From: Octopus bimaculoides
Lineage: Eukaryota
Reading direction: 5' to 3'
Length of the DNA stretch: 64,000 nucleotides
Assembly: GCF_001194135.2 (NCBI RefSeq)
Contig: NC_068992.1
Location: 52,273,287 to 52,337,286 of the forward strand
Made by a program: the position numbers and the translations under genes. This document shows positions 4,585 through 31,128 of this stretch, in pieces. Positions within the stretch are counted from its first letter, which is position 1. Every line of letters starts with the position of its first letter. The notes below the pieces were generated by a model, which was given only the letters and a program-made list of their open reading frames with translations, was not told the origin of the DNA and made no database searches.

Positions 4585-4631
4585 GGAACTCGACTGAGGA
4601 AAGGAAACTTCAAATGACCTGTCTTTGTTTT
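4585..4631 (+). ncRNA. Possible decayed hammerhead ribozyme (G12 to C)
   Basis: CTGAGGA 4594-4600, hairpin AAG-gaaa-CTT, CAAA in place of GAAA, GTC at 4621-4623; helices I and III are wobble-rich. Confidence 0.3.
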
Positions 4632-4778
4632 CTCTTGTCCCTTTTTGTATCATCTAACTGTCTGAATGTTTTGTTGTCACCTGTTGTGTACTTGTCCCAT
4701 TTTTTGTCTTCTTNNNNNNNNNNNNNNNNNNNNNNNNNNNNNNNNNNNNNNNNNNNNNNNNNNNNNNNNNNNNNNNNN

Positions 4779-5080
4779 ATATATATATATATATATATAT
4801 ACACCTGCACAAACACAATATACACAGACACAACACACACACATGTGCAGAAACACATATGCACGTGCACAAACACACACACACACACACACTCTCTGTC
4901 TCTGTCTCTGTCTCTGTCTCTCTCTGTGTCTCTCTCTCTGTCTGTCTGTCTCTCTCTCTCTCTCTCTCTNNNNNNNNNNTCTCTGTCTGTCTGTCTCTCT
5001 CTCTCTCTCTCTCTCTCTCTCTGTCTGTCTCTCTCTCTCTCTCTCTCTCTCTCTCACTCTTTCACACATACACACACATG
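4779..5080. repeat. Compound microsatellite (TA)n/(CA)n/(CT)n/(CTGT)n with N gaps
   Basis: Read directly; it is the source of several spurious ORFs. Confidence 0.95.
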
Positions 5081-6315
5081 CTGGGCTTCAGTTTCTATCT
5101 GATAAACCCACTCACAGGTCTTTGGTCAGTTCATATACTGCTGTACTTTTTAAGAAATGAAAATATCTAAATTAGTTTTATTGTATTGAGTGTTAATTAC
5201 AAATAATAAGTAGAACCAAAGTTATTTATAAAATGTATGCACAAAGAATTCGTAGGATTGATGCTAAGATCAGTTAAGTAGTAAGGGTCTGTGTTACCAA
5301 CAAATAAATTGGAAAATACAAAACTGAAATACTTTATGAAATTGAAAAGCATTCTGAAATGAAGCATAGACTAATGTTGACCTTAGATAACCTTCAAGAA
5401 ATACAATACCTTAGTACTTAAAAAAAAGGTTAAAATGAAGCCTCTCAGTGCAAATGAGCAAGTGTGTATAAGAATCATATTAAATAATACATTTTAATAA
5501 ATTTTCACATGAATAATTTGTTGTGAATAATATATAAATATGAAGCGTTAATACCAAAATAACAATTTAAGTCTTTCACATGTTCAGCAAAATTTTCAAA
5601 GTGATAGTAATGTTCTTCCTTGAATGAGAGAATAAATAAATGTTTGTGCTAAAGATTAAATTGCTAAGAGAAACAAAATAATAAAAAAGTTCTAAATTTA
5701 GAAAATCCTGAAAATTAAATAAATATATAATTATTTACTCTGCTCCCTGTTTTCTGTAGTAAATATTTGTCAAATCCATAATGATCTATACACTTTTACA
5801 AAAATAAATCTCATAACTTGATGGATGATATTTTCCCCCCACTTTCCAATGATTCACGTTATTTCAATAATGAAAATGTAAATTTACAAAAATCCTTTCA
5901 AATCTTTACAAAATTAAATTTCAACTTTAAACCCTACAAAGATATATTGATGACAAATAGATTTGGAAAACAATCACGTGAATAGAGTATGAAAAGAAAA
6001 TTCTTATCTGAACACAACAAAAAAGTAAACAAAATTTCATTAGAAGATGAAACCAAGCATTTGTAAAAGAAAAAAATAATAGTTCTTCAACCATTAGAGG
6101 GAGGGAATGGGTGAATAGATTCTAAATTACATTAAGGTATTGAATAAATATTTAAATAGTTTTGTACAGCAATTTGTTGCATCAATCAGCAATATTTTCC
6201 TAGGAACACATTTAAAATAACTGAATACTATATTATCTCATTAGATCCAAACCAAATACAAAATGTGTTGAGTATATATATTTTATTTATAAAAGCGTAG
6301 ATGCGTATACATACA

Positions 6316-6375
6316 TATGTATGTATGTATGTATGTATGTATGTATGTATGTATGTATGTATGTATGTATGTATG
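6316..6375. repeat. (TATG)n microsatellite
   Basis: Read directly. Confidence 0.95.
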
Positions 6376-7282
6376 TTAGCACATACAAGTTTAAACCATT
6401 GCCGAACAAAAAGATGATATCAGAATCCATTTACAACACCTATTCTGATGTGATGTATTAGAAAGAACTTATATTTCATAAAAATAATCTAAGGGCCTTT
6501 GTGACAAAAACTTCATCTAGTTAATGATTTAGATGAAATACCGAAAGCAGGATTGCTGCCAAGACTGTTGAGTTAGACAAATATATAAAGAATATAAAAC
6601 ATGATAAAATCCTCCAAAATCCCCTAAATTGGAAATAACTAGGCCTATGTTTTATAACAAGATTCTGATATAATTACCACATCTTTCTTGGAAATGTTTG
6701 AATAGTAAATGAAAGGCTTCCAAGAGTAAATAGATATCTACCCAAACTGTATGCAACTGACTTTATTTTATCCTATAAAGCTGAGTTAGGTGCTGGATTC
6801 TTCCTTCTGTAGATTAATAATCTTGTTACTTCTAATAACTTTCTGTTCTATACAGATGATACTATGCCTCAGTCCACTTAGCTTTTAAATCATTGACAGC
6901 TCAGAAAATATAAACACCTCACCAATCTCATATTTGACTGCTCATAATAACAGGGATCTCAGAAACATCCTTCGTTAATTACATAATAAGTATCTATTCT
7001 GCAATGACACTGAGACAATAAATAGAGATAAGAAGACAGTCTTACAAATGATTACACTTAAGAATGAACAACACTTAAGTATAACACTCTAAGCTGCTAC
7101 AAATGATGTTCAATCTTTGTCGTTTCTTTTGTGAGAACACTATGAATGGAAATCTAGATATGATCAATAACTAATGATTTGTAGGTACATGGTATTTTGA
7201 TATGCAACCATAATATACTATAAAATATATTAAATGTTTTTATAAGTCAATACCACGTTCTACTGCGTTAGCAGTGCTCTTA

Positions 7283-28345: not shown

Positions 28346-29773
28346 CTGATTTAATCGTTTTAAAATTTATCAATATTATGGTTATTATACTTCCATTTTT
28401 ACATTTTCCGGTCTTTTAGTCAGTCTTTTTTTCACCCCTGTTCTTGCTGGAATCTCTTTGATTATTCACATTGACATAGGAAGTACTTCTTGACCTACCA
28501 AACATTCAAAGAAACCAAATTTTGAAACCAAGAGACATCAGACAGTAATCACAAACACGTTCAACACCGTAATATTTGATCAAATAAATATATCAAATAA
28601 ACATCTCCACTGTTTTGTCGAATAATCTAGACGTTTATTTGTATCAGTTACATATGTGAGTTAATCGTGCTTCTTTCATTTTCTCTGCCTACTTCGAAAT
28701 CCTGAAACTTTCCAATATCACACAATGATGAATATGATGTTGATGATGTTGATGATGATGATAAAGCCATCACTGCTATTGCTCTCACTGTTGGTGGTAA
28801 AGATGACATCAGGGTCAGTGATGACAAGGAGGAAGAGGAGGAGGAAGTGTCAGGAAAAAAAGATGACAACAGTATCAACTATATTGATAAGGAAAATGAG
28901 GACACTAATGAAGCTATGACAATGATGAGGATGATGATGTTGGTGATGGTGATGATGATGATGATGACGATGAGGAGGAGGAGGGCAATGGTAACGGGGT
29001 GATCAGGACAATGGCTATAATCCTGATGAAAAGGGGAAGGAGAAAGAGTCGGACAACAACAATGACAATTATGATGATGATGATGATGATGATGATGATG
29101 ATGATGACGACGACGACGACGACGACGACGACAACAATGACGATGACAGACAGCAACGATGATGATGAGGATGATAATCATCTAATGGATTTATTTAACC
29201 AATCAGTGAGTTCCTACCTCTCCGAGTAATTAATTCAAGGAGGGGGGGGGGAAATAATAAACAAACAAGCAATAACACTATATTAAGCATATACATAAGT
29301 TATATCAAATACTAGCTACGATATGACAAGTAAAAACAGTAAAACAGTAACAATATACCAGCATCCTTCAAACAAAGATGAAATGCCTTAATTACAGTGA
29401 AACAGATGTGCCGAGTTTATTGGAGAATGCCAAAGAACATACAAAACCACTTATTTTCATTTCGTTTCTTTCCATCAATTTTCTTTTCAAATACAGCTTT
29501 TATGTATGTAAAAAATATTCTTAAATTTTCAGTTTCTATGCCAGCATGGAAAGCGGACGTTAAACGATGATGATGATAATATATATATATATATATATAT
29601 ATATATATATATATAAGGTGAAGTATATTTGCCACTTAAATGTAGCTGACCTCTAAGGGTGGATGTTACTGTTGCTTTTAGCCCCGGGAGAACATCTCCT
29701 CCAGCTGGCTATTGACACACATCTGTGTCCTGTCTGTATTTGCAAAGGGAAGTCATCCTTCCCATCTTGATCT

Positions 29774-29832
29774 GCGATACATACGGACTCGAGTTTCTGG
29801 GTATTTACCCGTCCTCAGAATATGACAATCAC
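29774..29832 (-). ncRNA. Type I hammerhead ribozyme motif with intact catalytic core, inside a ~310-bp element (29614-29925)
   Basis: Minus strand gtgat-tgt-catatt CTGAGGA c GGGT-aaat-ACCC a GAAA C-TCGA-G TC cgtatg-t-atcgc; helix III palindrome ACTCGAGT; predicted cleavage 3' of 29786. Confidence 0.8.
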
Positions 29833-30289
29833 CGACCTTCGATGCGAAAAATGTCCCGATACAAATACGTATATACTTTTTCCGGTGAAAATATTCACTG
29901 ATCTCGAAAAAGTGAAAACAATATATATGTTAAATCTCTGAGATTTAACATATGTATATATGTATTCTGTGTGTGTGTATATATATGTATGTCTGCATGT
30001 GTATGTCCCTGTGAGGGAGTTTGTAGTCCTCTAATGTTCATGTGTATTCGCTGTCTGTAAGCAACAGCTAAAATGTCAATAAAGGTGATGTCTCTCCTTT
30101 GCTTACAGTCAAGTGTAAAAGCATGTCCGAGCTTCCTGACATACTGTTACATGTTGTGCCATCTTTGAAAATAAATGGTGGATTTAGAGTTGTTTGTTTC
30201 CACTTTTATTTTCCGTAAGCATAGCCACGCTGTTTGTTGTTTGATAGATTAAGAGATTATTACATTGCTGGGCTGGGGGAAACTGGTGT

Positions 30290-30780
30290 GGGTTGGTAAC
30301 AAGGAAACATATCCGGCCATAGAAAATCTGCCTCGGACATATTTATCTGACTCAACCAAGCATGAGAAATGTAAATATCGATATGACGCTGCTGCTAGTG
30401 CTACTGGTGATGATGATGATGATGATGATGATGATGATGATGATGACGATGATGATGATGATGACGACAAAGACGAGGAGGAGGAGGAGGAGGAGGAGGA
30501 GGAGGCAGAAAGAGAATGATGATGGTGATGATGATGATGATGATGATGATGATAGTGTTGGTGGTAGTAATGGAGATGGTGGTTGCTGTTGTTTTTATTG
30601 ATGGTGATAGTAGTGGTGGTGGTGGTGGTGGCGGCGGCGGTGGTGGTAGTGGTGGTGTTGGTGGTGTTGGTGGTGATGATGATGAAGATGATGATGAAGA
30701 TGATGATGATGCTGATAATGATGATGAAGATGATCATGACAATGACAACGAAGATGATGATGATGCTTTTACATCGAATT
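30290..30780 (+). repeat. RTE-type 3' tip followed by a long compound (GAT)/(GAG)/(GGT) trinucleotide tract
   Basis: Read directly; it is the source of low-complexity ORFs. Confidence 0.8.
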
Positions 30781-30951
30781 AATAATCTCAGATAGCTAAA
30801 TAAAACACTCACCTGTATACAACGAAGCTTTAGTGCGAAGCAGAATTTAGGCTAAGTCAAACATGTTTGTCACATATTTCAACTGTTAAAAGGCAAATAC
30901 ACTGCAGTTACCATAGAAAAAAAAGGAAAATCTCTCTCTTACAGTAAAAAG

Positions 30952-31128
30952 GTGTGAAGGCACCTGGTTCATTCAGTGCCGCTATCCATAAGGAATCCCA
31001 GACATCGATGTTTCGAGTTTTTTGACTCTTGTCTGTGAGATGTACCTAAGAGAAGTAACTTTGAATGAACATAATATAAAGTTGTAGCTAATAGATGGTG
31101 ACACAGGATGAACCAGGTGTTTTCACAC
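30952..31128. mobile_element. 177-bp element bounded by ~42-bp imperfect inverted repeats
   Basis: gtgtgaaggcacctggttcat (30952-72) versus the reverse complement of 31108-31128 gtgtgaaaacacctggttcat, 19/21 identical; homology continues about 20 bp inward. Confidence 0.7.
30995..31041 (-). ncRNA. Decayed type I hammerhead motif inside the inverted-repeat element
   Basis: Helix I atctca/tgggat, core CAGACAA (two changes from CTGACGA), helix II GAGT-caaaaa-ACTC, GAAA, 10-bp palindrome ACATCGATGT, GTC triplet. Confidence 0.6.

Follow-up and report, generated by a model that had tools for sequence, protein, structure and literature searches.

Dispersed relics of hammerhead ribozymes are a known by-product of Penelope-like elements (PLEs) and retrozymes in animal genomes. 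Metazoan retrozymes and the pseudo-long terminal repeats (pLTRs) of PLEs contain type I hammerheads whose helix III is palindromic and of the dimer type (PMC4209133, PMC7229834). [quoted passage not shown] A long helix II with a short helix I has also been described for them, most are single dispersed motifs from truncated elements, and these minimal hammerhead ribozymes (min-HHRs) cleave poorly in vitro, even as dimers (PMC4209133). PLEs prefer to insert into microsatellites, including (TA)n (PMC8557442). The monomers of retrozymes are self-paired, low-GC units of 170-400 nt, and it is their tandem arrays that define retrozymes (PMC7229834); a 2026 preprint ties retrozymes to PLEs (10.64898/2026.07.22.740005). 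Octopus genomes are rich in Penelope elements (PMC13282606, PMC8967140), and we found no open-access report of hammerheads in octopus, except for a statement that the Naiad PLEs lack them. Here we consider a stretch of 64,000 nt from Octopus bimaculoides (contig NC_068992.1, positions 52,273,287 to 52,337,286), which we call the window and whose first nucleotide is position 1. We propose that three hammerhead-like loci in this window (A, B, and C) are probably solitary and decaying copies of hammerhead-bearing retroelements from three unrelated lineages.

We searched the window with a descriptor that consists of a CUGANGA-like box, a hairpin for helix II, GAAA, a palindromic helix III, UH, and a helix I of at least 4 bp. 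We counted matches that had a palindromic helix III and GUC and had up to two mismatches in the core. The complete type I order was found at three loci, versus a mean of 0.05 in 60 local shuffles that preserved dinucleotides. As a second control, we searched the real sequence with 60 decoy cores of the same composition, which retains the real hairpins and palindromes. This gave a mean of 0.17 matches, and none of the 60 decoys reached three. If at most one core mismatch was allowed, then there were two loci versus 0.02, and if none was allowed, one locus versus 0.00. All three loci have a three-helix junction that is open at helix I and closed or dimerizing at helices II and III (helix I of 5-6 bp, helix II of at least 3-4 bp, and a palindromic helix III). 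The invariant core (C3 U4 G5 A6 N7 G8 A9 / G12 A13 A14 A15.1 / U16.1 H17) is intact in locus A, while locus B deviates at U4 and G8 and locus C deviates at U4.

We also scanned metagenome sequences with the pattern CTGANGA-N8-24-GAAACTCGAGTC, which is of the type of locus A. Most of the 124 core-box matches were due to chance, and six of them passed the tests for helices I and II. All six belong to two genuine repeated hammerhead families, which are unrelated, so the helix filter is specific. The first family is a tandem pair on L010 (267-310 and 929-972, or 662 bp apart), with a score of 34.9 bits against RF00163, which reaches the gathering score. The second family (Ga0126336) is present on four contigs (L044, L046, L060, and L066), with conserved flanks of 160 nt and a mean column identity of 88%. 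Both families resemble locus A in their type I topology and in helix III (GAAAC-UCGA-GUC, ACUCGAGU). Their cores are intact. They differ from locus A in that they are demonstrably repeated, and neither their flanks nor their helices I and II are related to those of locus A.

The initial annotation of this DNA listed six loci with all or part of the type I order. Three of these are loci A, B, and C, where the full order is present, and the palindromic helix III that was reported for three loci is also borne out (ACUCGAGU in A, ACAUCGAUGU in B, and ACGCGU in C). The other three are matches to boxes alone, which occur at about the frequency expected by chance, so only three of the six loci stand. 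The box CTGANGA by itself was observed 30 times versus 29.8 expected, and the boxes in order but without helices were observed 10 times versus 6.7 ± 2.5. The looser criterion of all or part of the order thus carries no signal.

We rejected several other candidates. At 4585-4623 on the plus strand (core at 4594, CTGAGGAaagGAAAc), CTGAGGA-AAG-GAAAC...GTC is in order, but helices II and III are absent and helix I is marginal; a gap at 4714 starts 90 nt downstream. The site at 20395, which was thought to have had a fourth palindromic helix III (ACGT), has no CUGANGA box. A GAAACGT at 57823 is within the body of a tRNA-like short interspersed nuclear element (SINE) and lacks proper helices. Finally, loci A and B are not a pair of pLTRs, as their hammerhead types differ and their flanks are unrelated.

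Locus B is on the minus strand (31047-30992), and its structure closely matches that of canonical type I ribozymes from metazoans. This class includes RF00163, Schistosoma Sm-alpha, newt satellite 2, and the non-LTR retrozymes (PMC7229834). Reading along the minus strand, locus B comprises AGGUAC, which is a bulge on the side of loop 1 (31047-31042); the 5' strand of helix I, AUCUCA (31041-31036); a mutated core, CAGACAA, with U4>A and G8>A (31035-31029); helix II with its loop, GAGU-CAAAAA-ACUC (31028-31015); the GAAA box (31014-31011); the inner part of helix III, CAUCGAUG (31010-31003); UC (31002-31001); the 3' strand of helix I, UGGGAU (31000-30995); and UCC (30994-30992). Several of these features were not part of the descriptor: the 6-bp helix I, the 4-bp helix II that is closed by a G-C pair, and the 6-nt loop 2. 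The consensus of RF00163 is aUccag-CUGAcGA-GUCC-CAAAUA-GGAC-GAAAC-...-GUC-cuggAu, and loop 2 of locus B (CAAAAA) is identical to CAAAUA at five of six positions. Locus B also shares with the canonical ribozymes a GUAC bulge that is 6 nt 5' of the core, GGAUUCC on the 3' side of helix I, a short helix III with a palindromic UCGA tetraloop, and the GUC triplet.

For a direct comparison, we took the sequence of the N79 ribozyme, which is derived from Schistosoma Sm1, from PMC12550524. Both N79 and locus B have AGGUACAUC immediately 5' of the motif and GGAUUCC immediately 3' of it. In a local alignment with N79, locus B was the best match in the window, and none of 500 shuffles attained its score. 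Locus B has possible counterparts of the elements of the canonical metazoan contact between loops 1 and 2 (CAAAAA versus CAAAUA, and GUAC and UCC as in the flanks of N79). Loci A and C lack these, as do min-HHRs. If two copies of locus B are folded together, they form the textbook structure of a double hammerhead, in which helix III is intermolecular and 10 bp long and helix I forms in trans. The change at G8 falls in a CpG (ACGA>ACAA), as expected for decay. Because of the features that the descriptor did not ask for, the alignment to N79, the cofold, and the CpG change, we view locus B as a copy, now dead, of a canonical type I hammerhead.

Locus B lies within a rod-like, self-complementary unit of about 234 nt (30925-31158, minus strand), between inverted arms (31156-31088 and 30992-30924) that are 77% complementary over 69 nt. 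The predicted fold of this unit has an energy of -76.5 kcal/mol (z = -5.6), and none of 200 shuffles was as good. A low-GC, rod-like unit of this size is another similarity to the canonical systems. The differences from them are that the core of locus B is mutated (U4 and G8), that there is one copy instead of a tandem array of 150-450 bp units, and that its Rfam score is below the level that is reported.

Locus A is a type I hammerhead with an intact core (29824-29780, minus strand), and it matches the descriptor with no core mismatches. It comprises the 5' strand of helix I, CAUAUU (29824-29819); the core box CUGAGGA (29818-29812); helix II with its adjoining nucleotides, C, GGGU-AAAU-ACCC, and A (29811-29798); the GAAA box (29797-29794); the inner part of helix III, CUCGAG (29793-29788); U16.1-C17 (29787-29786), with cleavage predicted 3' of 29786; and the 3' strand of helix I, CGUAUG (29785-29780). 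Helix I is 5 bp and helix II is 4 bp and G-C-rich, and both helices form in the unconstrained minimum free energy (MFE) fold. At the base of helix II, where G10.1-C11.1 is expected, there is a C.A mismatch, which was possibly derived from C-G by CpG decay. Helix I is prolonged by an imperfect hairpin of about 130 nt in the predicted fold (29738-29868, minus strand), with the hammerhead junction at its tip. The entire unit is about 330 nt (29945-29616) and is bounded by TA/TG microsatellites (29946-29991 and 29577-29614). Its minus-strand fold (29616-29945) has an energy of -100 kcal/mol (z = -4.3), and none of 100 shuffles was as good. Both this unit and the 234-nt unit of locus B are low in GC and highly self-paired, as are the monomers of retrozymes.

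Locus C resembles a relic of a min-HHR (16547-16603, plus strand). It was found with the descriptor and has the core CCGAUGA. It comprises the 5' strand of helix I, UCAUA (16547-16551); the core, with U4>C (16552-16558); a long helix II with its adjoining nucleotides, A, GGA...AUGGAG-loop-CUCAU...UCC, and A (16559-16588); the GAAA box (16589-16592); CGCG (16593-16596), which gives the palindromic helix III ACGCGU; UC (16597-16598); and the 3' strand of helix I, UAUGA (16599-16603). The MFE fold contains both helix I and helix II. The last nucleotide of the motif adjoins a gap of 812 N (16604-17415), so the 3' strand of helix I is known for 5 nt only and the 3' flank for 0 nt.

Loci A and C are alike in having an unpaired nucleotide after A9 (that is, between A9 and 10.1), a helix II closed by a G-C pair, and palindromy in 15.2-16.2 and loop 3. 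These are the hallmarks of the PLE pLTR min-HHRs (PMC4209133), and other similarities to those ribozymes are the short helix I of both loci, their occurrence as single dispersed motifs, the long helix II of locus C, and the TA/TG microsatellites on either side of locus A. The palindromic, dimer-type architecture that the initial annotation had linked to PLE pLTRs and to retrozymes does match the published descriptions (PMC4209133, PMC7229834). From these comparisons, we infer that the ancestor of locus B was a canonical type I hammerhead like those of retrozymes, Schistosoma, or the newt satellite, and that loci A and C came from hammerheads of the min-HHR kind, with a small helix III, that is tied to PLEs.

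The claim that the flanks of these loci are mutually unrelated also holds: in pairwise alignments, the units of A, B, and C have no similarity to each other beyond the core. As for the reported proximity to (TA)n tracts, 25% of random positions in the window have a TA/TG run within 170 nt, so adjacency to a microsatellite is not far from what chance would give and is weak evidence. What remains of this claim is locus A, which is the only locus that is bracketed by TA/TG runs on both sides (probability about 0.026). This bracketing agrees with the bias of PLEs towards insertion in microsatellites.

If the ancestral elements worked like those in the literature, then a transcript with at least two copies would pair the palindromic helices III of two monomers, to form an intermolecular helix of 8-10 bp, and each paired core would then cleave 3' of GUC. 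The freed monomer could be circularized and reverse-transcribed, by the reverse transcriptase (RT) of a PLE or of another retroelement, and the resulting copy would integrate, often in a (TA)n microsatellite. Because invariant bases have been lost in B (U4>A and G8>A) and in C (U4>C), and because in A the base of helix II is mismatched (C.A), we do not expect efficient cleavage from any of the three loci now. The description of these families as self-cleaving is therefore not upheld.

Alternatively, at least one of the loci, most plausibly A, might be a still-active ribozyme from a live retrozyme or Penelope-derived family, with its RNA processed to linear or circular forms. The intact CUGAGGA...GAAA...GUC core of locus A, its 5-bp helix I that runs into the hairpin of about 130 nt, its 4-bp G-C-rich helix II, and the many undecayed CpGs in its unit would all fit with this, and recently active Penelope families have been reported from Octopus vulgaris. 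However, locus A is a single copy with no dimerization partner nearby, the C.A mismatch is at the conserved 10.1-11.1 pair, and the min-HHRs of PLEs are poor cleavers in vitro, dimers included. We consider activity at any of these loci to be unlikely. Locus A is the only one of the three candidates that is worth an activity test. More broadly, this genome might harbor live, uncatalogued retrozyme or Penelope-derived families with self-processed or circular RNAs, including a lineage-specific variant of the form CUGANGA-N-[G...C]-A-GAAAC, as seen in the unrelated loci A and C; we are doubtful of this as well.

Several results weigh against our proposal that A, B, and C are decayed copies of hammerhead-bearing retroelements. 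First, the descriptor was tuned after the loci had been seen. With perfectly closed helices, the strict descriptor had no match in the window, and it was relaxed to permit one mismatched closing pair. Second, we compared the whole window and four sub-regions to Rfam using cmscan, both at the gathering score and with E ≤ 10, and no hammerhead model (RF00163 included) matched anywhere in the window at the gathering score. Locus A had 10.3 bits against RF00163 (E = 9.1 in a search of 76 nt), versus a gathering score of 34, and in the sub-region scans, loci B and C had no match to a hammerhead model even in E-value mode. The negative results from Rfam are less damaging than they might seem because the models also miss the genuine Ga0126336 family: despite its proper helices, its intact core, and the conservation of its flanks, it scores just 19.6 bits, which is under every gathering score. 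Third, helix II is separated from G12 by one additional unpaired A in loci A and C (CCAGAAAC). This A is outside of the published consensus and, along with the U4>C change in locus C, distinguishes the two loci from the PLE min-HHRs. In locus A, it can be read as part of the C.A mismatch. Since this A recurs in two unrelated loci, we flag it as a possible lineage variant. The unpaired nucleotides on both sides of the base of helix II in A and C may reflect a lineage-specific variant of the hammerhead, or this may be a coincidence.

The fourth difficulty is the absence of retroelement context. BLAST of each unit against the window returned no further copy, and the units are not repeated in tandem or directly within the window, so there is no array of head-to-tail repeats of 150-450 bp that each contain a type I hammerhead, as would be seen for a retrozyme. 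There is also no sign in the window of the direct repeats around an ORF with RT and GIY-YIG domains that mark the pLTRs of a PLE. A Pfam scan of stop-free six-frame segments of at least 55 amino acids, from 3 to 33.5 kb, found neither an RT domain nor a GIY-YIG domain, with limited sensitivity, as the scan also missed a visible mariner relic. The only RT-related match in that scan was a sub-threshold match to RT_RNaseH. We also searched for relatives of the units with concatenated open reading frames (ORFs), and this was empty, as were exact look-ups of the predicted proteins. But the ORFs from transposable elements and SINEs in the window had only distant matches in the same protein collection (≤54% identity), plus one 42-amino-acid match to a SINE, which indicates that the collection does not include this genome, so this search is uninformative as to the copy number.

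Given these results, the loci could be chance resemblances in AT-rich, hairpin-rich, repetitive DNA, with no hammerhead ancestry. Nothing is significant in Rfam, the core is not intact in two of the three loci, and, besides the construction of the descriptor after the fact, loose box matches are at the level of chance. Nevertheless, we think that this is quite unlikely. Three loci were found versus 0.05 in shuffles and 0.17 with decoys; the canonical features of loop 1, loop 2, and helix I in locus B were not in the descriptor; and the genuine Ga0126336 family is sub-gathering in Rfam as well. It is very improbable that the units are hairpin-forming repeats that are not ribozymes (MITE-like, SINE-like, or inverted truncated insertions) and that mimic the helices of a hammerhead: locus B does lie between 69-nt inverted arms, locus A is in a long hairpin, and SINEs and microsatellites are dense in the window, but the ordered core boxes, the GUC, and the canonical loop 2 and UAC-containing 5' flank of locus B would go unexplained, and decoy cores on the same real sequence gave just 0.17 matches.

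The window as a whole is AT-rich (32% G+C) and laden with repeats, and it contains twelve runs of N. None of the motifs that we examined crosses one of these gaps. Downstream of the 812-N gap next to locus C, two blocks of 241 nt (17416-17656 and 17932-18172, each a SINE plus flank) are 100% identical to each other and flank a gap of 10 N (17657-17666), so this looks like redundancy in the assembly and not like a biological duplication. There are about 70 microsatellite runs of the TA/TG type. Searches of Rfam in E-value mode return dozens of matches to "miRNA" and snoRNA families (mir-3149, mir-297, mir-466, mir-5014, and sno_ZL1), which swamped the run on the whole window. All lie on TA/TG microsatellites and none reaches the gathering score, which marks them as artefacts (for example, 16301-16440, 33365-33451, 40153-40292, and 43611-43769). 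Long arrays of (GAT)n, (GGT)n, and (GAC)n at 30408-30765, 27924-28045, and 28922-29165 give rise to spurious ORFs for poly-Asp, poly-Gly, and poly-Ser, and one trinucleotide array is between loci B and A.

We also note the other mobile elements in the window. Copies of a tRNA-like SINE with TA/TG/TC microsatellite tails are at 17416-17560, 17932-18076, 44859-45008, about 16160-16260, and about 4230-4400, with another on the minus strand at about 2900-3052. One SINE copy is 87% identical over 42 amino acids to a stretch inside a 531-amino-acid protein with a SAM domain (UniParc UPI0006955229), which suggests that a SINE was exonized, or mis-annotated, elsewhere. Relics of mariner-like transposases, with stops and frameshifts, are at about 31600-32400 (plus strand), about 51000-51900, and about 300-600. 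Lastly, an ORF of 180 amino acids at 63426-63968 is the C-terminal part of ORF2 from a long interspersed nuclear element (LINE). Its identity to proteins in databases is 40-52%, and one of these proteins has PF13966.

The initial annotation was thus half right in what it observed, and its interpretation was of the right kind but went too far. In metazoan genomes, scattered remnants of hammerheads are well documented, so our finding is real but ordinary. A practical caution is that the hammerhead models in Rfam miss both the relics and an intact, multi-copy family, while matching the boxes alone over-calls at the level of chance. The main gain is in annotation: units of about 250-330 nt that would otherwise be "unknown repeat" or not annotated at all can be assigned to probable hammerhead-bearing retroelements. 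A genome-wide census of hammerheads in cephalopods could be a modest new contribution.

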